From the NCBI GenBank assembly GCA_030704615.1, contig CM060734.1, forward strand, positions 26,908,001 to 26,972,000: DNA of 64,000 bases. The letters are read 5' to 3'. Below the pieces are notes generated by a model. It did not search any database and was not told where the DNA came from. It worked only from the letters and a program-made list of their open reading frames with translations. Made by a program: the position numbers and the translations under genes. The first letter of the stretch is position 1; the number at the start of each line of letters is the position of its first letter. This DNA is from Takakia lepidozioides (lineage: Eukaryota > Plantae > Bryophyta). This document shows, one piece after another, positions 549-61,229 of this stretch.

Positions 549-3500
549 TTCAAACATTGCGAGTGTTTTGGACTTACCTTGTCAGAGGTACATGTCGAGT
601 ATCAGGTCAATCGAAATTGATTCAAAGGGTGAACCCATCGTTCCATGTTCAAATGAATTTTTGATTGCTTTCAATCTTTGCGAGTGTGTTGGACATACCT
701 TGTCACATGCTCCTCTCAAGTATGAAGTCAATCAAAATTGATGAAAAGGGAGAACCCATCGTTCGGTGTTCAAATGATTTTTGATTGCTTTCAAACATTG
801 CGAGTGTGTTGGACTTACCTTGTCAGAGGTACGTGTCGAGTATCAGGTCAGTCGAAATTGATTGAAAGGGTGAACCCATCATTCGTTGTTCAAATGAATT
901 TTTGATTGCTTTCAATCTTTGCATGTGTGTTGGACATACCTTGTCACATTCTACTCTCAAGTATGAAGTCAATCAAAATTGATTGAAAGAACCCATCGTT
1001 CGATGTTCAAATGAATTTTTGCTTGCTTTCAAACATTGCGAGTGTGTTGGACATACCTTGTCAGAGGTACGTGTGGAGTATCAGGTCCATCGAAATTGAT
1101 TGAAAGGGTGAACCCATCGTTCGATGTTCAAATGAATTTTTGATTGCTTTCAATCTTTGCATGTGTGTTGGACATACCTTGTGACATGCTCTTCTCAAGT
1201 ATGAAGTCAATCAAAATTGATTGAAAGGGTGAAGCCATCGTTCGATGTTCAAATGATTTTTGATTGCTTTCAAACATTGCGAGTGTGTTGGACATACCTT
1301 GTCAGAGGTACGTGTCGAGTATCACGTCAATCCAAATTGATTCAAAGGGTGAACCCATCGTTCGATGTTCAAATGAAATTTTGATTGCTTTCAATCTTTG
1401 CGAGTGTGTTGGACATACCTTGTCACATGCTCCTCTCAAGTATGAAGTCAATCAAAATTGATTGAAAGGGTGAACCCATCGTTCGATGTTCAAATGATCT
1501 TTGATTGCTTTCAATCTTTGCGAGTGTGTTGGACATACCTTGTCAGAGGTACGTGTGGAGTATCAGGTCAATCGAAATTGATTCATAGGGTGAACCCATC
1601 GTTCGATGTTCAACTGAATTTTGATTGATTTCAATCTTTGCATGTGTGTTGGACATACCTTGTCACATGCTCCCTCAAATATGAAGTCAATCAAAATTGA
1701 TTGAAAGGGTGAACCCATCGTTCGATGTTCAAATGATTTTTGATTGCTTTCAAACATTGCGAGTGTGTCGGACATACCTTGTCAGAGGTACGTGTGGAGT
1801 ATCAGGTCAATCGAAATAGTTTCAAAGGGTGAACCCAACGTTCGATGTTCAAATCAATTTTGGATTGCTTTCAATCTTTGCATGTGTGTTGGACATACCT
1901 TGTCACATGCTCGTCTCAAATACGAAGTCAATCAAAATTGATTGAAAGGGTGAACCCATCGTTCGATGTTCAAATGATCTTTGATTGCTTTCACACAATG
2001 CGAGTGTGTTGGACATACCTTGTCAGAGCTACGTGTGGAGTATCAGGTCAATCGAAATTGATTGAAAGGGTGAACCCATCGTTCCATGTTGAAATGAATT
2101 TTTGATTGCTTTCAATCTTTGCATGTGTGTTGGACATACCTTGTCACATGCTCCTCTCAAGTATGAAGTCAATCAAAATTGATTGAAAGGGTGAACCCAT
2201 CGTTCGATGTTCAAATGAATTTTTGATTGCTTTCAATCTTTGCATGTGTGTTGGACATACATTGTCACATGCTCCTCTCAAGTATGAAGTCAATAAAAAT
2301 TGATTGAAAGGGTGAACCCATCGTTCGATGTTCAAATGATCTTTGATTGCTTTCAAACATTGCGAGTGTGTTGGACATACCTTGTCAGAGGTACGTGTGG
2401 AGTATCAGGTCAATCGAAATTGATTGAAAGGGTGAACCCATCGTTCCATGTTGAAATGAATTTTTGATTGCTTTCAATCTTTGCATGTGTGTTGGACATA
2501 CCTTGTCACATGCTCCTCTCAAGTATGAAGTCAATCAAAATTGATTGAAAGGGTGAAGCCATCGTTCGATGTTCAAATGATTTTTGATTGCTTTCAAACA
2601 TTGCGAGTGTGTTGGACATACCTTGTCAGAGGTACGTGTGGAGTATCAGGTCAGTCGAAATTGTACGAAACGGTGAACCCAACGTTCGATGTTCAAATGA
2701 ATTTTTGATTGCTTTCAATCTTTGCGAGTGTGTTGGACATACCTTGTCAGAGGTACGTGTGGAGTATCAGGTCAATCTAAATTGATTCAAAGGGTGAACC
2801 CATCGTTCGATGTTCAAATGAATTTTTGATTGCTTTCAATCTTTGCGAGTGTGTTGGACATACCTTGTCACATGCTCCTCTCAAGTATGAAGTCAATCAA
2901 AATTGATTGAAAGGGTGAACCCATCGTTCGATGTTCAAATGATCTTTGATTGCTTTCAAACATTGCGAGTGTGTTGGACATACCTTGTCACATGCTCCTC
3001 TCAAGTATGAAGTCAATCAAAATTGATTGAAAGGGTGAACCCATCATTCGATGTTCAAATGATCTTTGATTGCTTTCAATCTTTGCAAGTGTGTTGGACA
3101 TACCTTGTCAGAGGTACGTGTGGAGTATCAGGTCAATCGAAATTGATTCATAGGGTGAACCCATCGTTCGATGTTCAACTGAATTTTGATTGATTTCAAT
3201 CTTTGCGAGTGTGTTGGACATACCTTGTCACATTCTCCTCTCAAGTATGAAGTCAATCAAAATTGATTCAAAGGTGAACCCATCGTTCGATGTTCAAATG
3301 ATTTTTGATTGCTTTCAATCTTTGCGTGTGTGTTGGACATACCTTGTCAAAGGTACGTCTCGAGTATCAGGTCAATCGAAATTGATTCAAAGGGTGAACC
3401 CATCGTTCGATGTTCAAATAAATTTTGATTAATTTCAATCTTTGCGAGTGTGTTGGACATACGTTGTCACATGCTCCTCTCAAGTATGAAGTCAATCAAA

Positions 3501-5066
3501 ATTGATTGAAAGGGTGAACCCATCGTTCGATGTTCAAACGATCTTTGATTGCTTTCAAACATTGCGAGTGTGTTGGACATACCTTGTCACATGCTCCTCT
3601 CAAGTATGAAGTCAATCAAAATTGATTGAAAGGGTGAACCCATCGTACGATGTTCAAATGAATTTTTGATTGCTTTCAAACATTGCGACTGTGTTGGACA
3701 TACCTTGTCAGAGGTACGTGTTGAGTATCACGTCAATCGAAATTGATTCAAAAGGTGAACCCATCGTTTGATGTTGAAATGAATTTTTCATTGCTTTCAA
3801 TATTTGCGAGTGTGTTGGACATACCTTGTCACATGCTCCTCTCAAGTATGAAGTCAATCAAAATTGATTGAAAGGGTGAACCCATCGTTCCATGTTCAAA
3901 AGATTTTTGATTGCTTTCAAACATTGCGAGTGTGTTGGACATACCTTGTCACATGCTCCTCTCAAGTATGAAGTCAATCAAAATTGATTGAAAGGGTGAA
4001 CCCATCGTACGATGTTCAAATGAATTTTTGATTGCTTTCAAACATTGCGAGTGTGTTGGACTTACCTTGTCAGAGGTACATGTTGAGTATCAGGTCAATC
4101 GAAATTGATTCAAAGGGTGAACCCATCGTTCCATGTTGAAATGAATTTTTGATTGCTTTCAATCTTTGCATGTGTGTTGGACATACCTTGTCACATGCTC
4201 CTCTCAAGTATGAAGTCAATCAAAATTGATTGAAAGGGTGAAGCCATCGTTCGATGTTCAAATGATTTTTGATTGCTTTCAAACATTGCGAGTGTGTTGG
4301 ACATACCTTGTCAGAGGTACGTGTGGAGTATCAGGTCAGTCGAAATTGTACGAAAGGGTGAACCCAACGTTCGATGTTCAAATGAATTTTTGATTGCTTT
4401 CAATCTTTGCGAGTGTGTTGGACATACCTTGTCACATGCTCCTCTCAAGTAAGAAGTCAATCAAAATTGATTGAAAGGGTGAAGCCATCGTTCGATGTTC
4501 AAATGATTTTTGATTGCTTTCAAACATTGCGAGTGTGTTGGACATACCTTGTCAGAGGTACGTGTGGAGTATCAGGTAAGTCGAAATTGTATGAAAGGGT
4601 GAACCCATCGTTCGATGTTCAAATGAATTTTTGATTGCTTTCAATCTTTGCATGTGTGTTGGACATACCTTGTCACATGCTCCTCTCAAGTATGAAGTCA
4701 ATCAAAATTGATTGAAAGGGTGAAGCCATCGTTCGATGTTCAAATGATTTTTTATTGCTTTCAAACATTGCGAGTGTGTTGGACATACCTTGTCAGAGGT
4801 ACGTGTGGAGTATCAGGTCAATCGAAATTGATTCAAAGGGTGAACCCATCGTTACATGTTCAAATGAATTTTTGATTGCTTCCAATCTTTGCATGTGTGT
4901 TGGACATACCTTGTCACATGCTCCTCTCAAGTATGAAGTCAATCAAAATTGATTGAAAGGGTGAACCCATCGTTCCATGTTCAAATGATTTTTGATTGCT
5001 TTCAAACATTGCGAGTGTGTTGGACATACCTTGTCACATGCTCCTCTCAAGTATGAAGTCAATCAA

Positions 5067-5924
5067 TTGACCTGATACTCCACACGTACCTCTGACAAGG
5101 TATGTCCAACACATTCGCAAAGATTGAAAGCAATCAAAAATCATTTGAACATCGAACGATGCGGTCACCCTTTCAATCAATTTTGATTGACGTGATACTC
5201 GACGCGTACCTCTTACAAGGTAAGTCCAACACACTCGCAATGTTTGAAAGCAATCAAAAATTCATTTGAACATCGAAGGATGGGTTCACCCTTTCAATCA
5301 ATTTTGATTGACTTCATACTTGAGATGAGCATGTGACAAGGTATGTCCAACACACATGCAAAGATTGAAAGCAATCAAAAATTCATTTCAACATGGAACG
5401 ATGGGTTCACCCTTTCAATCAATTTCGATTGACCTGATACTCCACACGTACCTCTGACAAGGTATGTCCAACACACTCGCAATGTTTGAAAGCAATCAAA
5501 GATCATTTGAACATCGAACGATGGGTTCACCCTTTCAATCAATTTTTATTGACTTCATACTTGAGAGGAGCATGTGACAATGTATGTCCAACACACATGC
5601 AAAGATTGAAAGCAATCAAAAATTCATTTGAACATCGAACGATGGGTTCACCCTTTCAATCAATTTTGATTGACTTCATACTTGAGAGGAGCATGTGACA
5701 AGGTATGTCCAACACACATGCAAAGATTGAAAGCAATCAAAAATTCATTTCAACATGGAACGATGGGTTCACCCTTTCAATCAATTTCGATTGACCTAAT
5801 ACTCCACACGTACCTCTGACAAGGTATGTCCAACACACTCGCAATGTTTGAAAGCAATCAAAGATCATTTGAACATCGAACGATGGGTTCATCCTTTCAA
5901 TCAATTTTTATTGACTTCATACTT
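5067..5924 (-). repeat. Inverted block of ~7 satellite monomers inside the array
   Basis: At ...AAGTCAATCAA|TTGACCTGATACTCC the monomers switch to reverse complement. They return to forward orientation at ...TTGACTTCATACTT|C|TTGAAAGGGTGAACC. Confidence 0.95.
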
Positions 5925-8900
5925 CTTGAAAGGGTGAACCCATCGTACGATGTTCAAATGAATTTTTGATTGCTTTGAAACATTGCAAGTGTGTTGGACT
6001 TACCTTGTCAGAGGTACATGTTGAGTATCAGGTCAATCGAAATTGATTCAAAGGGTGAACCCATCGTACGATGTTCAAATGAATTTTTGATTGCTTTCAA
6101 ACATTGCGAGTGTGTTGGACTTACCTTGTCAGAGGTACATGTTGAGTATCAGGTCAATCAAAATTGATTCATAGGGTGAACCCATCGTTCCATGTTGAAA
6201 TAAATTTTTGATTGCTTTCAATCTTTGCATGTGTGTTGGACATACCTTGTCACATGCTCGTCTCAAATACGAAGTCAATCAAAATTGATTGAAAGGGTGA
6301 ACCCATCGTTCGATGTTCAAATGATCTTTGATTGCTTTCAAACAATGCGAGTGTGTTGGACATACCTTGTCAGAGGTACGTGTGGAGTATCAGGTCAATC
6401 GAAATTGATTGAAAGGGTGAACCCATCGTTCCATGTTGAAATGAATTTTTGATTGCTTTCAATCTTTGCATGTGTGTTGGACATACCTTGTCACATGCTC
6501 CTCTCAAGTATGAAGTCAATCAAAATTGATTGAAAGGGTGAACCCATCGTTCGATGTTCAAATGAATTTTTGATTGCTTTCAATCTTTGCATGTGTGTTG
6601 GACATACATTGTCACATGCTCCTCTCAAGTATGAAGTCAATAAAAATTGATTGAAAGGGTGAACCCATCGTTCGATGTTCAAATGATCTTTGATTGCTTT
6701 CAAACATTGCGAATGTGTTGGACATACCTTGTCAGAGGTACGTGTGGAGTATCAGGTCAATCGAAATTGATTGAAAGGGTGATCCCATCGTTCCATGTTG
6801 AAATGATTTTTGATTGCTTTCAATCTTTGCATGTGTGTTGGACATACCTTGTCACATGCTCCTCTCAAGTATGAAGTCAATCAAAATTGATTGAAAGGGT
6901 GAAGCCATCGTTCGATGTTCAAATGATTTTTGATTGCTTTCAAACATTGCGAGTGTGTTGGACATACCTTGTCAGAGGTACGTGTGGAGTATCAGGTCAG
7001 TCGAAATTGTACGAAAGGGTGAACCCAACGTTCGATGTTCAAATGAATTTTGGATTGCTTTCAATCTTTGCGAGTGTGTTGGACATACCTTGTCAGAGGT
7101 ACGTGTGGAGTATCAGGTCAATCTAAATTGATTCAAAGGGTGAACCCATCGTTCGATGTTCAAATGAATTTTTGATTGCTTTCAATCTTTGCATGTGTGT
7201 TGGACATACCTTGTCACATGCTCGTCTCAAATACGAAGTCAATCAAAATTGATTGAAAGGGTGAACTCATCGTTCGATGTTCAAATGATCTTTGATTGCT
7301 TTCAAACAATGCGAGTGTGTTGGACATACCTTGTCAGAGGTACGTGTGGAGTATCAGGTCAATCGAAATTGATTGAAAGGGTGAACCCATCGTTCCATGT
7401 TGAAATGAATTTTTGATTGCTTTCAATCTTTGCATGTGTGTTGGACATACCTTGTCACATGCTCCTCTCAAGTATGAAGTCAATCAAAATTGATTGAAAG
7501 GGTGAACCCATCGTTCGATGTTCAAATGAATTTTTGATTGCTTTCAATCTTTGCAAGTGTGTTGGACATACCTTGTCACATGCTCCTCTCAAGTATGAAG
7601 TCAATCAAAATTGATTGAAAGGGTGAACCCATCGTTCGATGTTCAAATGATCTTTGATTGCTTTCAAACATTGCGAGTGTGTTGGACATACCTTGTCACA
7701 TGCTCCTCTCAAGTATGAAGTCAATCAAAATTGATTGAAAGGGTGAACGCATCATTCGATGTTCAAATGATCTTTGATTGCTTTCAATCTATGCAAGTGT
7801 GTTGGACATACCTTGTCAGAGGTACGTGTGGAGTATCAGGTCAATCGAAATTGATTCATAGGGTGAACCCATCGTTCGATGTTCAACTGAATTTTGATTG
7901 ATTTCAATCTTTGCGAGTGTGTTGGACATACCTTGTCACATTCTCCTCTCAAGTATGAAGTCAATCAAAATTGATTCAAAAGGTGAACCCATCGTTCGAT
8001 GTTCAAATGATTTTTGATTGCTTTCAATCTTTGCGTGTGTGTTGGACATACCTTGTCAGAGGTACGTCTCGAGTATCAGGTCAATCGAAATTGATTCAAA
8101 GGGTGAACCCATCGTTCGATGTTCAAATAAATTTTGATTAATTTCAATCTTTGCGAGTGTGTTGGACATACGTTGTCACATGCTCCTCTCAAGTATGAAG
8201 TCAATCAAAATTGATTGAAAGGGTGAACCCATCGTTCGATGTTCAAAGGATCTTTGATTGCTTTCAAACATTGCGAGTGTGTTGGACATACCTTGTCACA
8301 TGCTCCTCTCAAGTATGAAGTCAATCAAAATTGATTGAAAGGGTGAACCCATCGTACGATGTTCAAATGAATTTTTGATTGCTTTCAAACATTGCGAGTG
8401 TGTTGGACATACCTTGTCAGAGGTACGTGTTGAGTATCACGTCAATCGAAATTGATTCAAAGGTGAACCCATCGTTTGATGTTGAATGAATTTTTCATTG
8501 CTTTCAATTTTGCGGTGTGTTGGACATACCTTGTCACATGCTCCTCTCAAGTATGAAGTCAATCAAAATTGATTGAAAGGGTGAACCCATCGTTCGATGT
8601 TCAAATGATTTTTGATTGCTTTCAAACATTGCGAGTGTGTTGGACATACCTTGTCACATGCTCCTCTCAAGTATGAAGTCAATCAAAATTGATTGAAAGG
8701 GTGAACCCATCGTACGATGTTCAAATGAATTTTTGATTGCTTTCAAACATTGCGAGTGTGTTGGACTTACCTTGTCAGAGTACATGTCGAGTATCAGGTC
8801 AATCGAAATTGATTCAAAGGGTGAACCCATCGTTCGATGTTCAAATGAATTTTTGATTGCTTTCACAATCTTTGCATGTGTGTTGGACATACCTTGTCAC

Positions 8901-31000: not shown

Positions 31001-31602
31001 TATCACGTCAATTGAAATTGATTCAAAGGGTGAACCCATTGTTCGATGTTCAAATGAATTTTTGATTGCTTTCAATCTTTGCGAGTGTGTTGGACATACC
31101 TTGTCACATGCTCCTCTCAAGTATGAAGTCAATCAAAATTGATTGAAAGGGTGAACCCATCGTTCGATGTTCAAATGATCTTTGATTGCTTTCAATCTTT
31201 GCGAGTGTGTTGGACATACCTTGTCACATGCTCCTCTCAAGTATGAAGTCAATCAAAATTGATTGAAAGGGTGAACCCATCGTTCGATGTTCAAATGATC
31301 TTTGATTGCTTTCAAACATATCTCATGTTGGTTTTTTTTTTTTTTTTTTTTAAAAACTTATTTAAATTTTTTCCGGCATCCATTTATTTCGTTTTTACCT
31401 TTATGTTCTCCCGCACAGCCTCCACCTTCGGCAGCCAAAGGTGGCGTGTCAGTACAATCCCGTGTCATTTTTCATTATTGTTTCTCACAAATCCAAGCAT
31501 ACAATTACGGGCAGCCCGAGAAAAAATATTATATTGCCACGTGGCCGCCATTTCCGCATCCACGTCACACTGATGGCTGATGACTGATAGCTGATAGAAT
31601 AG

Positions 31603-34600
31603 CAAATCCCCCGACAAGGGGGTCTCCACTACTCCTCCCTAAGCTTGCTTGATGGCTTTTACCTCAGATCTAGTAATGAAATCCCCACATATCTTCACAG
31701 CCATGTCCATATCAACAGTCTATGCAATTCCGATCACTACCCGATCTCTATCTCTATTCCCCCATCTATTATCCCCTTCCGACCCCTCCTGGATGTACAG
31801 ACCCCACCCCCTCAACCCAGAATTCTATCACCCATCCCACAAAACAATCTCAAGGCCTTCCAAGAACACTTCCACACCGCCTCCTTTACCTTCATACATA
31901 AAATCTCCTCTACCCTCTCAGACACTAATATACTCTTATCTCCCGAGGCCGCATGGACCGAGGCCGAGATTATCCTCTCATCTACGATGCTAGACATGAC
32001 CAAAAGTGTCTTAGCCACATGCTCAGCTCCTCCAGACCTCCCACAAACCGCCCGCTCAAAGCAAAACGGCGGATATCTCACTAGGACCCAGAAACGGGCA
32101 TGGTCCTCCCACCTCAATATCTACCACACCATCCGACGGGCCCTTGCCGTCATACCCCACTCCCCACCCCTGACATATAACAACTGGAGAACCGATCCCC
32201 GCATAACCTGTTTAAATACATTAGAAGTATGCCAACCGCTCCTACCTCCACCCACGGACACCCACTCCCTTCCCCAATGGCTTGCCTCCCTATCCAAAAT
32301 CCGGTCGTAATGCAAAAAAAGCGGCATACCTTATCACAAAAGAAAAAGCCATAGCCAATCACAAAAAATTTGTTGCCTCCTTTGGCAAACTATTACATGA
32401 GACAAAGCTATCTTCAATCCTGCAATTAACCCCCCCATCGACTGTCTCAAACAAAGACTAGGCCACCTATTAACCAAACCTGACGGCATTCGGGATGAAA
32501 TATGGTCGCAGGCATCGACTTCATACACACCCACAGTCTCTAACTGCCTGCATCCAAGCCAACACGCATCCACTTATTTATGCAAATTCAAGCACTACCC
32601 GTGGCATGACCTTGACGGCTTCTCCCTAGAAAAACGCGGCCCCCCTACAGACCGTATAATGAATCTCTTCACAATAGACCTATACGACTCATGCCTCAAA
32701 AACCTATCCAAGGCCAAGGCGCCAGGCCCAGACCTCATACCCAACGCCATCCTCCAAGCACTCGAACCCCAATTTCATGACCTCCTCTTAAAAATTTTCC
32801 AACTCTGCTACTAGCTCCACCGTATACCACACTCTTGGAAGCATAGCAGGACCATACTACTATTCAAAAAAGGTGATCCCACGGACCTTGGTAACTACAG
32901 GCCTATCGCACTAGCTAACACTATATACAAACTATTCACTAGCACCCTGACAACAATGCTGTCTACCTATGGGGAACAACACCGGATCCTCAGCGACCCA
33001 CGCAATATCTCTAGCCTTACCCAACTTACCACTGCCACGGGGACACGGCTCTTAACGCCCACGCAATTCACCCTAAGACATTCTCGAGCCACCATCAAAA
33101 CATGTAGATATGTATCACACCTCCGCTATCTATTTTGACACCCAACGATCTCCTGTACCCTGGATTGTGACTTCCCCTGTCTACTCTTCCCACACAACCA
33201 GCAAGACCTCCTCCCAGAATTCAGAACAGCTCTAGCCACCTCAATATTCCAGCAGTTAAAAAACTCCCATAACATGCATGAACGTCCCACACAGGACACC
33301 CCCACCACCACCTCCCCTCCACTCCCCACACCTACTCAATCCCAATCTACCCCCCCCAGCTCCCCAAATCATACCGCCCCGACACTTAACTCCTACCCAA
33401 CAAACCCAGAACACCCAGAAGCCTTCGTTATTGAGGCTATCCATGGCATCAAAACCCAAACTTCACTGGACGCCTTTGGCGCCACATGTGTCGATACATA
33501 CTATCTCTGTAAATGGGCCGACTATCCCATTGAAGATAACACATGGCAAATAGAAGATGACCTCTTTGGCAACCATGAAATTGCGACCCCGTTCACAACC
33601 TCACCCTCCTGACTAATTTCCACAAATCGACTAACACTAAATACCTCCACCGACAACATGTATCCCAAACCCAATCAAGGGATGACAGATACATCCACAC
33701 CCCACTTGCTGCCCCAAAATTACGGATAACAATCTCCAAATGTAACCCTGACAAAGACATTGACCAAATCCACCCTGTCCTCTGCCCAAGCCATTCCGTA
33801 ACTAACATATACACACTCCATGGACAATTTGTAGGAACAATCTCTCACACAAGGATCGCATGGCTCTGGGAGCGATATACTGCTTCCGCCATCTACACTA
33901 ACCAGCTTCAACCCCCTAGGCAAGACTTCGCCACTGAAGTATGCTGGCTAGTCGCCAGATACTTACGCAATACCCCCACTAAAAAACCTCGTACCCCTGA
34001 CAAATTAGCTCAAGCCTATGCCCATAGCACCGTCCCGGCGAATATCCTCAAATTTCTTAAAAGGCACCGCGACTCAACACACATGGTCAGGTCATGGCCT
34101 TGCCCACCCGCCACCTGGACACCTCACGCATGAAGCCCTCCAATGGGCTCGCCCTGCTGCCCGTTCCTCCCCCTCCTCTGCCACTATCCTAATTCTCACG
34201 GAACAAAAGTCACCTGCTCAACAACACCCCTTACTCCAACTCCCTCATGGGGTAACAACATTAGCCGCCATCAAACCAAACCAACTTTGCTACGCGCGAA
34301 ACCTACCCTTCCCTAAATACTTGCGACACAAAGAGCATACTCTGATATTAATTCTGCTTGTCCATAATAACCCCCACCCTTATACCCCCCGACTTCCCTA
34401 CGCACCTTAAACATCTTCTATCTGATACCCATGACATGCTACTCACCACTTACATACCCCAAGCGAGCCATTGTCCTCCCACCCGACCACCGTCTAAACA
34501 AAAAACTCACACAATCTGGGACAAAATCCCACCTCGTCCCCACAACCCCCCCTCATGTAACCCCTCACGACCCCCCGCCGGTCTACCTTGGGCCCACCTC

Positions 34601-35760
34601 CCCCAAATACCCCCCACTCCACTCACACTACACGGATGGCTCCCAGTCTGGCTCTCTCGCTGGATATGGCGTCTTTCATGCCGCCACCAACAAAGGGACG
34701 GCCCATAGGCTCCCTGGACCCGCCACATTCTCTGGGCCGAGCTAATGGGCATCTTTGAAGCCCTGTCACAACTCACCCTATTCCCCCCACCATACTACAT
34801 TTTTACGGACAGCCTCAACTCACTCTTTTTACTTAGAAACCACCTGGCCTGCCCCTCCTCCCACCTCCACCACCCCGACCACAACCTTATCTCTGCTATT
34901 GCCAACTTAGCAAAGATAAACCCATCCACTTTCTCAAAGTTTGTTCGCACACTGGTATTGCTGGCAACGAAGAGGCAGACCTCCTAGCACAACTAAGAGC
35001 CTCTAAACCCTCAGTTGAACCACCAGCCAGCCCCATTCACGTCGCCCATGCACATCCCTTCTGGATGATCTACCCGGTACCTAGCCCTCCAACAACCCGC
35101 CCAATCCGAAACCTCCTTAAAACCCTCACTAAGGAAGCCAACAAACAAGCTGCAGCCTCTCTCAGCCACACCAAACTTCATATCCAAAAATGGACCCTCT
35201 CCAATGTGTTGCACCATAAATTATCAAACCACTTATGGAACTCTAAAGCCGCCTCAGATGCTCAAATACGGCAAACACTCAAAATTTAGATATGCTCAAT
35301 ACATGGGCCACCAATGCAACACACCTTCTGGCCAACCCTATATCCATCCCCGCACTGCCCACTCTTTTCCCACCTCCATGCTAAACGTGACACCTGGCCT
35401 CATATTCTCAGCGAATGTCCGCACCCTGTCATCCACGGGTTGCGAATCGCTCGTCTTAACCACGCCGTATGACACATCCACAAGCTGTTCTTACAACGTC
35501 GTACAACCAAATGGTTTACACTCATCAATGCTGGCACCTACTAGGGCCGGCCCCCCGACCACACTGTACCTACTTGGCTCCTTCCATGTATCTGTCAACC
35601 TCACGTATCTTGCACATGCCCCGCTAGACTATGCCCGGACATTCTCCTAGTCCAGGGCCTACCCACTGACACCCCCCTCCCCCCCCCCCCCCTCTCTACA
35701 CCATCATCAGATATCACAATACATTTTATAGAATTCACATACTGTCATGACCGCTTCCTT
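31603..35760 (+). mobile_element. Degenerate Dualen/RandI-like non-LTR retrotransposon: APE C-terminus, partial RT, chromodomain, RNase H, CCHC, restriction-like endonuclease
   Basis: APE end: SLLDGFY...CNSDHYPISISI (~31640-31760). RT start: KAPGPDLIPNAIL...TILLFKKGDPTDLGNYRPIALANTIYKLF (~32715-32940), then an internal deletion near 32997. Chromodomain ~33418-33565. RNase H: YTDGS/AELMGI/IFTDSLNS/SHTGIAGNEEAD (~34630-34990). C-terminus: CPLF..DTWPHILSEC, RLNHAV, CPDILLV...IEFTYCHDRF (~35355-35757). Several stops and frameshifts. Confidence 0.8.
33418..33565 (+). other. Chromodomain-coding segment within the non-LTR element
   Basis: EAFVIEAIHGIK...YYLCKWADYPIEDNTWQIEDDL aligns by eye to the chromodomain consensus E-Y-EVEKIL...YLVKWKGY-EEENTWEPEENL. 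The cage aromatics F, W and Y are present. Confidence 0.8.
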
Positions 35761-35766
35761 GGGGGG

Positions 35767-37097
35767 GATGCCTCCGCGTGAGCCTGGTCGCTTGAACATG
35801 TGAGCACGTGAGCACAGTCAGGCTCACACCACGTCAGCAGTCCTCGCCAACGTGGTTGACGCCACGTCACGTCATGCCACGTCATTTCCATAGGCATGGA
35901 CCTATAACCGCGGACAGAACAGGCGGAAGGGGGGAATGCTAGATCGTGAGCCCAAAGGCGTGAGGTAGGTGCCTATTTCCGTGGAATGATTTACCTTTTC
36001 CAGTCATTGCAGACTACATCTTTAACATGAAAGGAAGAATGAGCGTGCTAGTTTCAACAAGCTTTTGCATCAGTCGATAACAAGGTGTAGTAGCAGTTCC
36101 CAGTATAGATCCCCAACCCTCAAAGTTAGTCGGAGTGGAATTGAGGCTTTCCTACGTAAAAATCGCCCAGATGGAATAGACTGATTTAGATATGGTCTAC
36201 ATACTAAGCCCTTGCAGGTTTGGAAATTAAGTATCAAGTATCTGCTCTGTTTTTTTTTTTTTTTTTTTTGGGAACAATACGGAAACACAGAAAAAAAAAA
36301 AAAAAAAAAAAAAAAACAGAGCAGAGCAGAAGTGATGATCCGCATCAATCATCACTTCTGATGATTGGTGCCGATCATCACTTCTGCTTTGTTTTGGCAT
36401 TTGGCGTGTGCCCTGTGTGGCAAGTTCTTAGACCTCATGCATCATGGCATCTTTGGACGTCAAGATGGGCTCTTGGCTTTGAGGGGAAACCATCTTCTGA
36501 TAAACTTGTAAGCTCAGTCCACTCAGACTTTTTGTCTTTGTCCCGTAAGGCGTTCCGCATGGTTGGGGAAGGTGTTTGCAGATGTGCCCTCTGGTTGGAT
36601 GCTATTTTTCTATTATTTGGTCTTCCATCTCAGTCTACCGTGTATCTCTGTTGTGTCGTTATGTATTGCCGGCTTCTTTTTGATACCATCATCCCTCTTC
36701 TCTTCGTTATTTGGGGAGGAAGCAGGGTCTTCCTGGGTTAGCCTCTATGAAGCTTTACGAGGTTATTTTGTCCTCTTTGTAATTGTTATTGTAAAACTTA
36801 CAATTGTAATTGCAGAATGTTGTGGAATGGATACCACAGTTTTAGGCTTATTTCCCATTTCGGGTATTTTGATGGTATTCTTGATGGTATTTTGGTTTCA
36901 TGTTGCCTAAGTTCATCCCACGGTCATAGGACCCTCGGGTATAGGCGCCGTATGTTTCTGTTGATGTGGCGGATGCTGACGTGGCGCCACGTCAACATTC
37001 GACACCATGGCAACCTGTTGGCATCACGCTCACGCCACGTCACCAGTGTGTGAGCGTACGCTCACACGCTCACACGCGAGGCTCACGCGGTTGCGTT
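35767..37097. mobile_element. Non-autonomous TIR DNA transposon (~1.3 kb)
   Basis: Perfect 12-bp inverted repeat CCGCGTGAGCCT (35774-35785) / AGGCTCACGCGG (37079-37090), with GTGAGC/GCTCAC and CACGTC subterminal motifs. No convincing coding capacity. No TSD identified. Confidence 0.6.
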
Positions 37098-37147
37098 GTT
37101 GCTTTCCTGGTGCCGCTATTCTAGAAAAACGTCAAAAATACGCACCA

Positions 37148-38520
37148 TTAATACTTGCCATCCGCAGACAATGATAGGGCACTGGCCCATTCACTGTCAT
37201 CACTGCTGGCACCAGAGGAAGTATTCATAATGACAACATCTCCGCCCTCCAAAACAATTTTCAAATCCCTGTCACATCTGTCCATAAGTGTTTCAAAGCC
37301 ATACACCTCATTGCGCTCTGCTCTCTCACTGCCATCATCACCAACAAGCGCCAACTAGAATCCAGCCTTCCTCCCGCTCCCTAGGAACCTTGTCCCATTC
37401 TATGACGAACGATGCGATCAGCCACAGAATCCCCCAAGATTGCAGCTCTGAACTGAAGTGAGTTTGTGATGCCCAATCGCCGAAGCTCTTCCTGCGAAAG
37501 GGTGACATCTGTCCGAAGTCTGCGGGAAGTGGATGGACCCTCAACAAGGGTATGAGGCCAAGATGACCTTGCGTGCCTCCGAGTCTCATTGTAAAATGTC
37601 TCCAAGACCTCATTGTCGTCATGGTCTGACTTAGCCTCAACAAAAGGAGGGATGTCTCCATGGTGTGATAACCGAGTCTCTTGTAAAATGTCTCCAAGAC
37701 CTCATTGTCGTCATCGTATGACTCAGCGTCAACAGGAGGAGGGGTGTCTCCATGATGTGATAACTACTTCATCTGATCTCCAACAGTATCGTCACTCTCA
37801 TGAAAATCCTCTACAACTTCATCATCCTCTGCATCTTCGTCGTCATCAGTATCCTCCACATCCTCATCGTCCTCACCATCCTCTCCATCCTCATGACTGC
37901 CATCATCCTCCCCATCATCATTGTTCTCATCATCTTCATCATCATCGCTCTCCGCCACTCCTTTGATCAACCTGTATTCGCGGGCTTTCACCTTGCATTG
38001 TTCAATGCGCTCGCCATCTTTCGCAAACCAATTGGACATGGCATTGTCAACGAACTCGGTGATGAACTCATCTTGCTGTCTACACCATTGTCAAAGCCAA
38101 AAAAATTATAAGTCTAAATGAACAAAGTACATCAAGTATAGCAAAAGAAGAACAAAATACTTAAGAGAGAATCATGATAAGTACCTCCCCAAGCTCTGCA
38201 GATTGTTGGGATCATTCTTCCATATTGTTTTCACTTTCTTCGTGTACTTGGCAATTGCTTTGGAACGCAACAAATTATACCGTACATGCCATGAACGCAT
38301 CATTTGGAGGCTACGGGCCTTAGACATCGCTCCATCATAAGCAATTGCAACGGTTCGTGGACGACCAGACTCTCCATGTGGCAACGGAGGTTGTCCGCAT
38401 GGACCCATGTGGTTGTTCAGGCTACTTTTGGCTCCATAGTCTTTTGTGCACTTTAGACATATCCACCTTCTAGTCTCAAGATCAAAAGAGTAATGCTCTC
38501 CCCCTTTAGCATACTCCATG
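37148..38520 (-). pseudogene. Probable TE-associated spliced gene remnant: C2H2/C2HC-like zinc finger plus acidic domain
   Basis: WICLKCTKDYGAKSSLNNHMGPC in the 38172-38567 ORF. A probable GT-AG intron at ~38197-38084 leads into an Asp/Glu-rich ORF (37764-38039). An internal ~93-bp duplication lies at ~37581-37765. Downstream frames are broken. Confidence 0.4.
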
Positions 38521-47692: not shown

Positions 47693-48827
47693 TTAAGCTC
47701 GTTCCTGCTCATCTTCCCACTGCCACTCTTGGTCCACCTTGGTCAGCTTGGTTAGAGCCTTTGCAATGGCACTAAATCCTTTGAAACCGTCTATAATAGT
47801 TTGCCAACCCCATGAAAGCTCAAACTCGGCTGCTCACATCTGTGGGGCGTGGAATTTGTGCAATGGCCTCTACCTTACTCTGCTGTACCCCCAATCCTCC
47901 AGGATATATCATGTGACCCAGATACTCAATCTGGTTGTGGAAAAACTTGCACTTCCCCGGATGCAACTTCAATCCGTGCGCTCTCAAGCGCTCCAATACC
48001 ACCTGAAGGTGTCTCTCATGCTCCTCCACCGTAGCACTAAAGATGATGATGTCATCTATGTAGCACCGAGCAAAATCCACCCCTACTAGAATCCTATCCA
48101 TGACTCTCTGAAACTCTGCAGGAGCATTCTTAAGCCCAAATGGTAAGAAACGCCACTGATATAGGCAATCCTTGCCGTGCTCATTGATCCTCCAGAATGT
48201 CGTCTTCTGCTTGTCCGCCTCCTTGATCGGCAACTGGTGATATCCGGATCGTAAATCCAAAGTGCTAAAGACCTTAGCATGCCCGATGGCATCAAAGATC
48301 TCCTCTGGTGTTGGCATGGCATACTTATCGGACTTGGTCTGACGATTTACAGGCCGGTAATCACCGCACATACGTCTCTCCGTCCAATTGCCATAGACAT
48401 CCTTCTTGGCTGGCATCACTGTGGCTGAAGCATACTCTCCATCAGAGAGCTCCACCAAACCAGCCTCCCAGAGATCTTGAGTCCTCATCTGAATCAAAGA
48501 CCTCTCCATGTCACTGTATCTATAGGGTCTCCGAAAGATTGGCGTGTCAGTGGCCAACTCAATACGGATATCTTGACCCTTCAGTGCTCCCAAGTCCTTC
48601 AAACTGAAGGCAAATCATCCTGTAAGCCCTCAGGAACCGCCGTATACGTCATCTCTCTCCTCTGGTGACAATGGGTCCAATGAGGCTCCCAATTGTCCTC
48701 CGTAACTGCAACCTTAAGTCTAGTGGGCTTAGAGATAGAGGACGCGTCCAGTGGTTGCTATGTTGCAACCTCTTGAGCAGTACTCCCTACCTGCTCAGTC
48801 AATGACAAGGCCTCATCCTGCCCCAGC
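47693..48827 (-). mobile_element. Ty3/gypsy pol fragment (RT and start of the connection/RNase H region)
   Basis: ORF 47820-48602: [51 protein letters not shown]. After a frameshift it continues RAFMGLANYYRRF...EWQW. Confidence 0.95.
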
Positions 48828-49079: not shown

Positions 49080-50760
49080 GAGTATCGTCATTCATTCTCT
49101 AGGGAAGAGGGTTGAGCGCTCATTTGTTAGAGAATGGGTCATATCACATCTGGGAGGGCAGGGTGATTTGCAGCAGCATTTCTACCATGCTAAGGGGAGG
49201 GGGTTCTTTTCCATTCTCTTTGAAAGCAGGGAGGCAGCGCAAAAGGCCTTACATTTCAATCCTCATCTCAAAGGGTATAATGTAAATATATTCCCATGGT
49301 CACCAATGATGGGCAACAAAAATGGCAAGATTTGGGCTCCTAGGATTGTGGTGGTTTCACAAATTCCAGACCAGTACCTCTTCTTCCTGCCTGACATTGG
49401 GAACTCCTTTGGCTGTTATCTAGGATGTTTGGAAGTTTTCGATCCTAACATGTCCATGGATTCACTGAGAAATGACCCTGCATGGAAGGATGCCACAATT
49501 GCCTCAAAAATCAAGGAGAATGGGGCTCCAAAAATCGTCATCATGATGCCAAGTGAGGACTCAATCCCAAAATATGTTTTCTTTGGAAACCCTCCTCTGA
49601 AGGTACCAGAGGAGGGACGACAATCCTTCTTTCACCCTCGCTCAAAAAATTCTTGGTTAAAGATGAAGTTTGGGAACTTGGAAGAGTTCAGTACTCATCC
49701 TTATTGCTCCCTGGCGACTCTGAAACAATTGGCTTCCTTAATATCTATGCTCCCAACTCTCCCTCGGAAAGAATGGCACTGTGGGATAAGTTAAACTCTA
49801 GAATGATCAACGAGACTAGCACTCACAAATGGGTGTTAGCGGGAGATTTCAACATGGTGGAAAATGAAATAGACAGACGGGGGCGTGGCTCGCAGCATCT
49901 CGACCATGAGGAAGAGCGTATGTGGCAAGTCCTGCTTCAGACCCATAGCCTGTCCGAAATCGATGCTCTCCCACTCGATCCATTAGGGATTAATCCTTTC
50001 TTTACCTGGTCCAACAACAGAGACCTGGTGGACCTCAGCATGACACAATTTCAATGAGTTGTTCAAATCTGACCCCTCTCAGCCAGACAGCCAAACCAAT
50101 TTGCTTAACTGTCTTGCAGCTGTTCCTCTTAAACTCAATCCCGAGGAGGCTTTGGCCCTCGAGGGACATTTCACGCCTCAAGAGCTGGGGGATGCCCTTG
50201 ACCTCATGAACACCAACAAAGCGCCAGGAATCGATGGGATGCCGGTGGAGTTCTACAAGGCCATCTGGACTGAGATCTCCGATGATTTCTGTGACATAGC
50301 CAATAAAATCAAATCGACTGGCCTTATGCCAGCCTCCATGTCTCAGGGGGTGATCTCCTTGTTTTTCAAGAAGGGGGCTTTCCAAATTCTCCTTTTCCAA
50401 TCTTCTAGCAGGGTAACGATCAACGACCATCTGTCTAAACCATTTCAGCTACAAAGGTCTGTCAGACAAGTATGTCACTTAGCACCCTTCCTCTTCATCT
50501 TTGTGGCAGACACCATGGGTCATATGTTGGATAGTAATCTGCAGGTCAAAGGGCTGCAGTTGAAAAACCCCAATCGCAGCTATGGACACAAGTCAAGGAT
50601 TCTATGTTCATTTCTGCCTTTGGACGCCACCCCGTTGTCTCTCACAGCTGCGGAGAATACCTTAAAAGACTTTTGTCAGACCTGTCTCCGGCTTCAGGGT
50701 CAATTGGTCAAACACCAAAGTAATATTGGTTGGAGACCGGGCTATTTCAACGTGCCATGG
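49080..50760 (+). mobile_element. Internally deleted plant L1-type LINE (ORF1 RRM/DUF4283-like, APE and RT fragments)
   Basis: ORF1-like: GRGFFSILFESREAAQKAL...IFPWSP. APE: NIYAPNSPSER, WVLAGDFNMVE, FTWSNNR. RT: NKAPGIDGMPVEFYK, GVISLFFKKG, SVRQVCHLAPFLFIFVAD. The intervening segments are deleted. Confidence 0.85.
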
Positions 50761-50799
50761 ACACTATCCTACATGGAGATCAGAGAGCGTGCCAAAGTT

Positions 50800-51850
50800 T
50801 TGGTTGATCAGGTGAAGGTTTTAGAAAGGCTGAAAGCAACCAACTTACACCTAAACCCTAATAAATGTCATTCCCAAGAACCCTACTGGGGTGAGAGTCT
50901 TTGTTGGCATGTCTGGGTGTTACCGTATATATGTTCAAGGGTTTGCTCTTATATTTGTTTCCTTGTTCAATTTGACCAAAAAGGATGTGCCTTTCAAATG
51001 GTTTGCTGATGCACAGAATGCTTTTGAGGCACTTCGCCTAAAACTGATGATTGATGTTTTAGCTAGGCCAGATTTCCCCAAGCCCTTCAATATTTTAGAT
51101 GTAGACTGGTCATGAAAGGGCGTGGGAGCCATTCTATCTCAGAAACATCAGCGGCGTGAGCATATGATTGCGTATGCAAGTGAGGTCTTGTCTGACGCCC
51201 AGCAGAAGTACCATCCGATAGAAGGTGAGTGTTATGCCCTTGTGTGGGGAGTTGTTCACTTTTGGCAGTATCTTTATGGTACATCCTTCATTATCAAAAC
51301 TGATCATAAGCCCTTGGAGTGGCTAGCTACAGTAAGTGATGCCTAAGTAGGCGTGGGAGATGGATAATGATGCTTCAAGATTTTGATTTTAAGATCGTCC
51401 ATAGGGCATGATCCAAGCACTCCAACGTTGATGCGTTGAGTAGGTACCCTATGGGACTAGCTGAAGAGACTGAGGAGTTGGAAGAGAATAGTGCTGCTCT
51501 ATGCAGGTCAGTGGGGAGTGAGAAAGGTAACAAGGGTTTCTTTCTTCTTGAAATTGTGAACAATGGTGGGATTGCCCATGCTATCTTGTATTGGTGTGAG
51601 AATGAAAAGAAAAGACTGGAGTCTCAAGCATGTCGAGAGGTGTCATGTCTCTTGGACCCTGGTAGTCTTGCATTCAAGAGAGAGGAATATTACATATGTG
51701 TGTGGGCGTTTTGGCATTTGATCAGAAATCAGCTGGTGGGGCAACATTTCTTTGTACTAACAGATTTGGATCCTTTCTGGTGGCTCTAGTCTGAGCACCA
51801 CACAGGCAGAAAATGTCTGGAAGATTTCTCCTTTGAGTACATAGAGTCAA
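50800..51850 (+). mobile_element. Ty3/gypsy connection plus RNase H fragment, followed by a second degenerate RNase H-like segment
   Basis: LFNLTKKDVPFKW, RPDFPKPFNILDVDWS*KGVGAILSQ, IAYASEVL..AQQKYHPIEGECYALVWGV..F..YLYG..F...TDHKPLEWL, LQDFDFKIVHR, NVDALSR. Confidence 0.9.
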
Positions 51851-53663: not shown

Positions 53664-56600
53664 CAGGGTTGCACACGTCACGTCGGACCTGACGCTAACG
53701 CGACCAACGTCACGTCAGTTTTGCCGAAAAATCAGTAAAACATGAGTTAGGTGAAAAATATGCCACATAGGTGGACACGTTGTATTCCAAGCGACACCTT
53801 GGTAAGTGAATGAATTGTTTTATAAATTACTCCATCCGCCAATAGTTGAGGTCATTTTTAAATCATAATTCTTAAATTGGTGCGACCTCCAAATGATGGT
53901 GGTCGCAAAATTTATCTTATTTTTTAATAGTTGCGACCACTAGCAGAGGGGTTGTCGCAGCATTTTTTGTTTTTTTAAAATAGATGCGACCACCAGCAGG
54001 GTGGTCGCATTTTTTTCTTTTCTTAAACAGTTGTGACCACCGCTACTGGTGGTCGCACAATTTTTATTTTATTGCGGACTTTTTGCTGTTGTGGCTTCCA
54101 CCAGAGCCACTGCAACAAATTGTCGAAAAGCACAATACTACATGGTGCATTGATCCACTTGGATTGATGCCGTAGTGTTGGGCCATCACATTATGTTCTA
54201 ACTTCAATTGCTCTTGACAAATCTACCAAGTACACTAGTGTTCTTCGTTCAACCTTAAGTCTGTGGTTAGGGTTTTGGGTGTGAGGATGAGGGAGGAGTG
54301 GATCCCTTGGTTCACCATAGACCCGCACAAAAAAGACGGTGTTCAATGCAATCTTTGTGTATTGAAGCTGGCGGGTCGCAAAGATCGCATGTTATATCAC
54401 CTCGGCTACAGAGATGGGAAGAATGCAGGGGTTAGTTTGTGCCCAAAAACCTCCATGCGAGTGAAAGCCCACTTTGCTCAATGTGGAGGCAATATCCCAC
54501 CGTCTCTTGATGTGGCTGCGGCTTCTGAGCCAAACACTCCAAGTTCGAATCAAACTATCCCTCAGAGTTGTACCCAGGGGGATTCTTGCGAGGCGTCTAC
54601 TGTTCGTGGAGAAGTCGGTGGGTTAGGAGCAACACCCGATTGTACACCAGCACTTGTACGGACCAGACCATTGAGGCAACAATCAATGCAAGAAGGCTTA
54701 AATTTGTCGCACATGAGGACTCTGGATAAGAAGTGGGTCAATTTTTCTACGAGGCCAATATTCCGTTCAATGTCTCGAGGCTTCCTGCGTTTGTGGCTGT
54801 TATCAAAGCCACGTCCGATTCCAAGTCCACATACACACCTCCGAGTTATCGCGATCTCCGTACATGATTGCTAGAAGAGGCTATGTCTGATCTCACCCAA
54901 AAGGTGAATGAAAAGACAGGTGATTCTCTCCAGAAATATAGAAGCACTATATGTGCGGATGGTTGGAGTTCTGTTACTAATCGACCACTGTTCAATGTCA
55001 TTCTGCTCTGTCCTGCGGGGGAACAATTTTTGGGATCCGTTGACACAAGCGGGGAGAAAAAAGATGCACGTTATCAAGCAGGGTTGTTAACGAGTTACAT
55101 CGATAAAATTGGAGCTGATAAAATTGTCCAAGTGTCCATGGACAATGCATCTAACATGGATAATATGGCTGATATTTTGATGGTACGATATCCCCATCTA
55201 TATTACCAAGGGTGTGCTGCTCATATCTTTGATCTCCTTTTGGAGGATTTTCCCTCTGGCATTGTTTAGAAAGCATGAACCCAAATACAGCCTTAGGAAC
55301 CCGGGTGAAACCCGCTTTGCCACAAACTTTTTGATGGTGGAGCGACTGGTGACTGTGAGGGCGGGTCTGGAGCACGTGATCATTGACCTACAATGGGATG
55401 CGTATGTGGGCACTTTACGCGACCCTCATAAGTCCAAGTCTTTGAGCAAAATTCGGAGGGTCCGCGCAATCATTCGCTCCGACGATTTCTGGGCGAAATG
55501 TGCAAATTTTGTGTACATGGTGAAGCCGGTGTTGATTGCTTTGCGGGAGTTTGATGGAAAACAACCAATAATGGGTAAAACATGGTTGATATTGAAAAAC
55601 CTTGAGAAGCACGTGCAATCCTTGAGGCGTCCTCCATTTTCTATGGACGATGATTTGGCGGCAAGGACTGAGGATGCATTTTACGACCGCAAACGGATGG
55701 TTCGCACGGACTTGCATTATGCGGGGGGCTTGCTGAATCCATTCTTGCTAGACAATACGGATTTGAGAGATGATGTGGATGCCAAAGCCGGGCTTGTACG
55801 GGTCATCATGCAACTTGCGCCCTTGAACATGGCAGAGCGAGCGTTGTCCGAGTACCAGTGCTTCTCGGATCGGCAGAATCCTTTCCACATACCGGATCCA
55901 AAAGCAATGAACATGTTGCCACATGAATGGTGGGATCTGATTGGAGCTGGAGCAAAAACGTTAGCTCCCATTGCAAAGCGTATTCTTGCTTAAGTGTGCT
56001 CTACCTCGTCCTGTGAGCGGAACTGGAGCAGTTACTCGTTTATTCACAACAAGATTCGCAACATGTTGAATCCTGCCAGGCTGACAAATTGGTTTATGTC
56101 TACACGAATTGTAGGCTACTGCGAGAGATGAGAGCAAGTGGCGCATCTGCATGGTACGAGAAGAATTTGTTGTATGAAGAATCTGCCTCAGAGGTCCAAT
56201 CTAGCAGCAATGATGACACTGACGCCGCGAGGGACTCCGACTCCGACGGTTGGGATGGGTCCGATGATATGGGCAATCCTCCACATGACAATGATGCTGC
56301 AATGCATCCATCCTTCGATGACCTTGTTGTTGATGAACTGCGACATGGTGTCATCCCAATTGCGGACCCCCTTCCCCCAGTGGAGCACACTTTCAACAAT
56401 AAAGTTGAGGTCAACTCTCCCCCACCACGAGTTCCACGGACTGCGGGAGTTGTGCAGGTCGAATCGTCGGATGATGACAACCGACCGTTGTCATTCTTTC
56501 ACCGACATCGTGCCCTTGTGAACCGTGCTCCATCTCACCCCGCTCCATCTCATGTTTCTCTTTCTCAAGCCGGTCCATCCCATGCTGGTCCATCTAGTCT

Positions 56601-60020: not shown

Positions 60021-60049
60021 TCTATGCTAATTTGCAAAGGCACGACAGA

Positions 60050-60310
60050 TTTGGATAGAGCTCTTAAGCAAGAGCCATACAAGTCTATTGTAGAGGTCAA
60101 TAATGCGATCAGAAGGGGAGCCTCGCTGATCAAGTGAGAAGCCATCAAGATCATGCCGTGGATAGTGTTTGACTTTACATATGCAATTAGATGTGCAATG
60201 GTTAGGATGCATATAGTTAACTATAGTAGGTGAGTAGGATGATGAGGCCTGAATCCAAATTTTGTTGTTGATGTCGTCGGGTTTGGTTAACAGGTGGCCT
60301 AGTATGGGCA
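60050..60310 (-). mobile_element. Second, more diverged fragment of the Dualen/RandI-like family (pre-RT linker)
   Basis: LGHLLTKPDDINNKIWIQASSSYSPT...HYPRHDLDGFSLDQRGSPSDRI matches LGHLLTKPDGIRDEIWSQASTSYTPT...HYPWHDLDGFSLEKRGPPTDRI encoded at ~32458-32660. Confidence 0.8.
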
Positions 60311-61229
60311 GTTGCAGCCTACGGTGGACCAAAAATGCTGTCACAACACTGTTTTTTTGGGACCTTGTGTAGAATAATAGAAATTTCTTTGTGGAATAGC
60401 ATTTAGAATTGGAGTGCAAATGAACAAAAATTGGATGTGAAATTGCACTATGGGGTTCGATAATTTGATAGAATTGGGTAGGATGCTAGAACGGAAATAA
60501 ATTCAGATAATGGGGATGATAATTGGTAGGAATGGGGTTATTAGGATAGATGTTAGCCCATAGAATTAGTGCTAGGTAGTTATGGTAGTTAGAATAGGAC
60601 ACTATGAGTTCCGCTGAATCGATGTATTCATGGTCATTCAAGCGAGAGTGCTGAGGCCCTAGCACAGGAGATGCTAGTTTGTTGTTTTCAGTAGCTTAAG
60701 TAAGATATAAGAAGAATATGAGTAGTGTGATGAGACAAAGATCTGATGAAAGACTCTGTAAGCTTCATGTTAATGTGATGAGATGTTGGAGTTTAATGGG
60801 AAGAATTTTGTATGAAAGAAAAAGATGAGGATTATTTGATGAAGTGTGCAGATCAATACGAGAGGAATTTAATTGAGATGAATATTAAGACATTTATTGT
60901 TGGGAGACAATTAGAAGTAGATATAGTGTTCTAATCACGACATAACAATTCAATTGTGTGCTTTCCCCAGCGAACGAACCTTAGAACTAATTGATCATCT
61001 TTTAGGATTGATTATAGTTTTATTCTACACCTTGATTAGTAAATCATCATACTCCTAAATGGCAATGCTGATAGTAAAAAGGGACTAAGCTATGAAGGCT
61101 CAACTACATATATTTCCCCTATTCCAAGAAAACTTTAATGTAGACAAATTAGTTGCAAATGAAATGAAAAATCTCCAAACAAATGTAAAATACATTTAAA
61201 CTATATTACATATTATAAAATAATTACGA

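Follow-up and report, generated by a model that had tools for sequence, protein, structure and literature searches.

The 64,000-nucleotide stretch of the Takakia lepidozioides genome analyzed here (the window) contains, at 31603-35762 and 37103-37384 of the plus strand, the collinear remnant of a retrotransposon without long terminal repeats (a non-LTR element). This locus is very probably a dead copy of a high-copy element of the Dualen (RandI) type with a native chromodomain. From 5' to 3', the copy carries the tail of an apurinic/apyrimidinic endonuclease (APE), the N-terminus of a reverse transcriptase (RT), a chromodomain, a PCIF1_WW-like region, an RNase H, a CCHC knuckle and an R2-type restriction-like endonuclease (RLE). 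An earlier note, made from the sequence alone, had described a dual-endonuclease long interspersed nuclear element (LINE) with most of these modules. All those that it listed were found on the plus strand and in the order that it gave, although only the N-terminal third of the RT and the tail of the APE are present and the knuckle has lost its second Cys. The note overlooked, however, the PCIF1_WW-like region at 33594-34371, and it wrongly ended the element at 35760, since the RLE continues at 37103-37384 past a 1340 bp insertion. Its central proposal, an APE plus an RLE in the same LINE, is borne out, as both nucleases occur in one collinear element in the window and in two of the relatives presented below (L001 and L012), and the same order is displayed by the overlapping parts of two others (L007 and L011).

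The proteins of the copy were searched as stop-free pieces, with unrepaired frames and no consensus. The RT piece retrieved 30 proteins with 51-76% identity. The contigs of the relatives were from JGI metagenomes (L001-L006 and L013-L019) and from ENA assembly ERZ25073694 (L007-L012), and they shared no DNA with the window at 85% identity or more, which indicates that they represent independent genomes. Their open reading frames (ORFs) mapped back on the window in order, with tblastn E values of 1e-9 to 7e-55, and the pieces of the copy aligned to L001 with their order strictly kept, the APE tail coming first and the RLE tail last. Judged from these sequences, the intact architecture of the family is APE, RT, chromo module, PCIF1_WW-like domain, RNase H, CCHC and RLE, probably followed by a 3' tail of the microsatellite type. 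The ORF is followed by (GA)n in L012 (14904-15070) and by (AAT)n in L010 (15042-15244), and not by poly(A); inspection of the sequence after 37384 disclosed no recognizable 3' tail in the Takakia copy. A search of the ESM Atlas yielded no usable match or generic RNase H only. In L012 (1794-8472) and L007 (1935-8291), about 6.5 kb of same-strand ORFs with no Pfam match precede the APE, so that complete elements may exceed 13 kb and represent giant LINEs with an additional N-terminal region.

In one sequencing run of the source organism, 1712 contigs matched 31450-37440 at 80% identity or more, showing that the family is present in high copy number in the T. lepidozioides genome. For annotation purposes, a high-copy repeat family of this genome would thus be a Dualen-type LINE with many defective copies. 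A second fragment of the same family was observed in the window at 60051-60303 of the minus strand (ORF 60030-60485); it corresponds to the region just before the RT and resembles 32457-32711, with 70% identity at the DNA level and 62% at the protein level.

The element has a marked strand composition, with a GC skew of about -0.4 to -0.7 over 31600-35760 and again at about 37100-37400. We observed that the sense strand is poor in G, both in the copy (13.7% G and 36.7% C in 31603-35762) and in L001 (11.7% G in 600-6400, with long open frames), and that the encoded proteins are accordingly rich in P, T, H, S and L. Being common to separate genomes, this G-poverty can be considered a trait of the lineage. 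A G-to-A or T-to-C hypermutation private to this copy was considered as the source of the C-rich strand and rejected, because other copies are at least as C-rich at differing sites and the relatives are also G-poor.

The copy itself is an inert relic. It is truncated at its 5' end inside the APE, it lacks the RT core with the YxDD motif, its RLE is split by an insertion, one Cys of the knuckle is lost, and several stops and frameshifts are scattered across the remnant. Its longest preserved part is 31603-33609, which reads in one frame with only four stops in the three-frame translation and encodes what is left of the APE, the beginning of the RT and, last, the chromodomain. As to the succession of events, the 5' truncation in the APE and the loss of the RT core were followed by the entry of the 1.34-kb repeat into the RLE, with stops and frameshifts accumulating.

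Endonucleases, RNase H and the missing RT core

The APE C-terminal tail spans 31603-31790, with the SDH motif at 31729-31737, and the 5' end of the copy corresponds to approximately residue 126 of the APE ORF of the relatives. It is followed by an APE-RT linker (31791-32400) with collinear tblastn matches to L001 and L007. Residues 126-315 of the L007 APE ORF (L007:8501-9502) mapped onto 31612-32217 (tblastn, E 3e-17), and this ORF was recognized by the Pfam profile Exo_endo_phos_2 with an E value of 4.2e-8, as was the APE of a second relative (E 1.4e-7).

At the other end of the element, the RNase H (34572-34980) lies between the RT and the RLE and is split over three frames. It was delimited with an L011 ORF that aligns over the RNase H to RLE part of the copy (tblastn, E 3e-42) and with the RNase_H profile, whose E value was 0.0012 in this copy and 3.6e-14 in L011. 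The D, E, D, H and D motifs that had been claimed for it are all there (YTDGS at 34629, ELMGI at 34739, FTDSL at 34802 and SHTGIAGNEEAD at 34945), and the RNase H tail of the copy aligned to RNase H1. There follows a conserved segment (34981-35463, from tblastn and an alignment of the copy with L001, termed A1) which comprises a linker, the degenerate CCHC knuckle at 35356-35420 (CPLFS..H..C, at 35356) and an RHN-like motif at 35449-35463.

The first part of the RLE occupies 35545-35762, with PD at 35635 and IEFTY at 35728, and showed 40% identity to residues 3-99 of the L012 RLE ORF (tblastn, E 3e-16). The second part and the end of the ORF lie at 37103-37384, with EKRQKY at 37124 and an ITAGTRG motif; they were matched by residues 99-186 of the L012 RLE (tblastn, E 1e-9) and by L001 6210-6395 (E 5e-10). 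In alignment A1, the RLE pieces of the copy were 36-52% identical to L001, with the PD, IEFTY and K..KY motifs shared. PDB sequence searches with the CCHC piece, the RLE of a relative and an RLE profile yielded nothing relevant. The CCHC-RLE part of L001 was modelled with AlphaFold on alignment A1, the pieces of the copy included (pLDDT 68, pTM 0.70), and its six best Foldseek matches were all R2 proteins (E 5e-6 to 1.6e-4, TM 0.49-0.56), with other PD-(D/E)xK nucleases coming next. These structural matches of the L001 model bear out the earlier assignment of the C-terminus to an RLE.

The RT is represented by its N-terminal part at 32401-33072, with motifs 0 to 2a (KAPGPD, FKKGDP and NYRPIAL), where residues 46-272 of the L007 RT ORF aligned with 48% identity (tblastn, E 7e-55). 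The Pfam profile RVT_1 matched the copy at 32815-33135 with an E value of 0.017 and the relatives with values of 5e-12 and 9e-14. The nearest PDB match of the RT piece was the R2 RT (E 0.008), and for the RT of the relatives R2 was likewise found (E 2e-12 and 3e-11), while L1 ORF2p was matched at 1.6e-7 or not at all. The earlier note had held that its reading would fall if the RT grouped with L1 or RTE; among solved structures, which are here the only proxy for a tree, the RT of the relatives is nearer to R2 than to L1 ORF2p.

Homology to the RT of the relatives ends at 33072 and resumes, after the chromodomain, at 33594. Between these points the relatives have about 1.73 kb and the copy 0.52 kb, so that there is a net loss of about 1.2 kb that corresponds to the RT motifs through YxDD plus the thumb; no YxDD motif was found in any frame of the copy. 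The loss is located in a Pro/Thr-rich remainder (33073-33415) that the tblastn coordinates of the relatives leave unaligned. A placement of the chromodomain within the palm of the RT, after motif B and ahead of motif C, with SRDD and RITISKC taken as motifs C and D, was tried and rejected, because the region downstream is homologous to the PCIF1-like domain of the relatives and not to RT, and because 33040-33432 has no significant similarity to the RT of the relatives.

Another copy provides a hint on when the core was lost. One of its contigs, 82% alike (that is, about 18% diverged), spans 33117-33522 with two gaps and does not contain the missing 1.2 kb, which suggests that the deletion is older than the divergence of at least two copies. 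The block could then descend from a non-autonomous element that had already lost its RT and spread in trans, and not from an autonomous copy that decayed. We regard this as a realistic alternative, if a somewhat less than even one: the spanning contig was a single one among those listed, a segmental duplication would look alike, and depth in the bin 33250-33449 was below that of the neighbouring bins. An RT-less derivative may therefore have multiplied, either mobilized in trans or by duplication.

The chromodomain and the PCIF1_WW-like region

The chromodomain lies at 33436-33573, where Pfam Chromo (PF00385) scored 27.8 bits against a gathering score of 25.1 (E 2.5e-6). By alignment, the three aromatic-cage positions are the F in AFVIE, the W in CKW and the Y in ADYP, and the NTW motif is kept. 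Its frame is that of the RT part, and in other copies one added base after 33579 places the next ORF in register with it. The relatives carry at the same position a counterpart module (YxIxxILDHK ... YLC(Q/K)W ... KWxPQ) that is held inside single ORFs of 601, 455 and 250 residues. The model of the L012 module depicts a three-stranded sheet plus a helix, and, with few exceptions, the structures that it matched were chromo or chromo-shadow domains (VIA Z of 5.1 at most, with 2.5-3.9 A over 50-59 aligned residues). Since the chromodomain is in frame with both neighbours, the junction is shared by the copy diverged by about 18%, the relatives have the module at the same position and the L012 model has a chromo-like fold, we conclude from alignments and modelling that the chromodomain is native to this LINE lineage and not a nested fragment. 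This agrees with the earlier note, which had assigned the chromodomain to the element itself: a homologous module is found in single ORFs of relatives that come from different assemblies, and diverged copies share the junctions. The note had also named separate nested elements as a possible source of the domains, and what other copies and relatives show is instead a collinear order with the chromodomain in frame.

Next to the chromodomain, the PCIF1_WW-like region (33594-34371) was delimited with the 601-residue ORF of L012, which runs uninterrupted from the end of the thumb to the RNase H. Residues 118-276 of this ORF mapped onto 33594-34082 and residues 306-354 onto 34063-34209 (tblastn, E 5e-23). 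Pfam recognized PCIF1_WW in L012 and L001 with scores of 33.0-34.0 bits against a gathering score of 31.1, the match being partial (profile positions 8-106 of 176), and the region of this copy had no Pfam match of its own. A candidate for the NPPF-type catalytic position, unaligned to PCIF1 itself, reads HPPPGH in the copy, NPND in L001 and HNEKD in L012. No relevant match was obtained with the PCIF1-like piece in the protein search or with the PCIF1-like pieces against PDB sequences.

Several observations weigh against our reading of the element. The APE of this copy is a tail only and has no Pfam match of its own, and the proposed membership of Dualen/RandI would rest on architecture and proximity to R2 and not on an RT tree with Dualen/RandI references. 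With respect to the chromodomain, the module of the relatives was not called Chromo by Pfam, the similarity of a profile built from the relatives only to canonical chromodomains was weak (P 0.01, and 1.3e-4 when the sequence of the copy was added), and the Foldseek scores of the L012 module were modest (E 0.1 or worse). The third cage aromatic is absent in the relatives, so that the ability to read methyl-lysine may be restricted to part of the lineage. Moreover, no long satellite array was found in the fetched loci of the relatives (up to 10 kb of flank each), in which the largest tandem repeats were of about 0.5 kb.

These observations raise the possibility that the element is the one we propose but that its chromo-fold module no longer reads histone marks and, placed between the RT thumb and the PCIF1-like domain, serves as a spacer with a structural or nucleic-acid-binding role, with no chromatin targeting. 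The absence of the NTW motif in the relatives and the fact that the best structural match of their module is a chromo-shadow domain also point in this direction. On the other hand, the Takakia subfamily has the most canonical version of the module, which keeps the NTW motif as well as the F/W/Y cage and scores above the Pfam threshold, and in copies at least 80% alike the bin that holds the chromodomain has one of the highest coverages within the element. On balance, we lean against such a spacer, while giving it a substantial chance.

The reading of the block as a composite artefact, in which a piece of a host chromodomain gene or of a chromovirus (the chromodomain of a Ty3/gypsy integrase) is nested in an ordinary LINE, is highly improbable and already largely refuted: chromodomains are a hallmark of chromoviruses, a gypsy RT exists elsewhere in the window (47820-48602) and the disappearance of the RT core beside the chromodomain proves that a rearrangement happened there, but, in addition to the frame, the shared junction and the single ORFs of the relatives described above, Pfam searches with all pieces disclosed no integrase, LTR or other gypsy domain adjacent to the chromodomain, the block has one and the same strong G-poor skew from end to end, and the chromodomain piece, which had no match in a word-indexed protein search, retrieved from 1.8 billion representative proteins only multi-chromodomain proteins and no close chromovirus donor.

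Known elements and possible mode of action

The combination of APE and RLE is the stated hallmark unique to Dualen (PMC9977147; also PMC5029228 and PMC4640811). Like the Dualen/RandI elements of Chlamydomonas and the cryptophyte Dualen-1_GCr, the Takakia family has, in one element, an APE before the RT and an RNase H, a CCHC and a PD-(D/E)xK endonuclease after it; it differs in the land-plant host and in two added domains, a chromodomain and a PCIF1_WW-like one, that separate the RT from the RNase H. The acquisition of accessory domains is known for the clade, as Dualen-1_GCr carries a SET methyltransferase and a C48 peptidase (PMC5029228), and in Chlamydomonas the putative centromeric regions are made up in part of Dualens (PMC8226300). 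R2 (Bombyx, Taeniopygia and Platysternon; 8GH6, 9DOU and 9NL2) is the best structural match for the CCHC plus RLE fold and the nearest solved relative of the RT, but it is specific for ribosomal DNA and lacks the APE, the RNase H, the chromodomain and the PCIF1-like domain.

Chromodomains are placed in reviews among the accessory domains of LTR elements (PMC6338049 and PMC5348765). Chromoviruses (Ty3/gypsy), as well as Chronos and CoDi-I, resemble the Takakia family in having a chromodomain in a retroelement polyprotein; they are, however, LTR elements with this domain at the C-terminus of the integrase, whereas here it comes after the RT thumb of a non-LTR element. Concerning the other accessory domain, the relatives pass the PCIF1_WW threshold and the region of the copy is homologous to theirs, which relates them to the cap-adenosine N6-methyltransferase PCIF1/CAPAM. 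In contrast to PCIF1/CAPAM, the domain is embedded in a LINE polyprotein and matches the profile only in part, and any catalytic competence is putative.

In the literature searched, which did not include Repbase, there was no report of a chromodomain in a Dualen-class element; the sole paper with both "Dualen" and "chromodomain" had the latter in the title of a reference on a gypsy element. None of the Dualen literature searched deals with land plants. Our findings would extend a rare and little-known clade, described in that literature from green algae and cryptophytes to a land plant, and would add two accessory domains to it. Chromodomains are the textbook route by which LTR retrotransposons find safe landing sites, and their presence in a non-LTR element, with a different integration mechanism, would represent an independent, convergent solution.

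From the biochemistry of APE- and RLE-type LINEs, active members of the family would be expected to multiply through target-primed reverse transcription. The target DNA would be nicked by one nuclease or by both, the RT would extend from the nick on the element RNA, and the RNase H would remove the RNA template. By analogy with chromoviruses, the chromodomain in the polyprotein would most likely tether the RNA-protein particle to chromatin marked by methyl-lysine. According to Gao et al. (2008), as cited in PMC5348765, the chromovirus chromodomain directs integration to heterochromatin, and tethering in the Takakia family would skew insertion towards silent regions as the chromodomain of the chromovirus integrase does. 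It is conceivable, albeit unlikely, that active members of this plant lineage were the first LINEs steered by a chromatin mark, with a chromodomain that would read H3K9 or H3K27 methylation and direct target-primed reverse transcription to heterochromatin, for example around satellites, and with a PCIF1-like domain that might act on the element RNA. A native LINE chromodomain would also offer a testable handle on the target choice of LINEs.

The insertion, the satellite array and other repeats

The 1340 bp that interrupt the RLE (35763-37102) were recognized as an insertion private to this copy because in several contigs from other copies 35755 is followed, after 14-16 nt, by about 37120. The GC skew breaks at this point, and the insertion is itself a very high-copy repeat in the genome. 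At its ends there is a 12-bp subterminal inverted repeat (CCGCGTGAGCCT) and an imperfect flanking direct repeat of 8 bp (TTCCTTGG / TTTCCTGG), and a T20/A20 hairpin core is found at 36241-36396. The insertion is probably a non-autonomous DNA transposon.

Upstream of the element, Tandem Repeats Finder identified at 549-31319 an array of about 256 monomers of a 120-bp satellite, with a higher-order period of 241 bp. The earlier note had suggested that the lineage may target methylated heterochromatin such as this satellite; the copy is not within the array but sits 283 bp beyond it, in other repeat DNA. The spacer in between (31320-31602), which contains a T20 run, is outside the LINE, and its 3' part is itself a high-copy repeat as judged from the contig depth of bin 31450-31649; a kinship of this spacer with the insertion at 35763-37102 was considered, but no relation was found. 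On the other flank of the array, at 3-548 of the plus strand, we observed an open and well-preserved LINE RT N-terminus of about 180 residues (GGPDGI, KKGD, NYRGITLL and QAGFR) that stops exactly where the array starts (549). With no more than 31% identity to the Dualen-type RT, this fragment is part of a different LINE family, and both flanks of the array thus bear LINE fragments in the same orientation. Further transposons were noticed in the ORF translations: the Ty3/gypsy-type RT mentioned above, which is on the minus strand, a decayed L1-like LINE with APE and RT at 49168-51009 of the plus strand, and, also on the plus strand, an apparent hAT-type transposase at 54263-55993.

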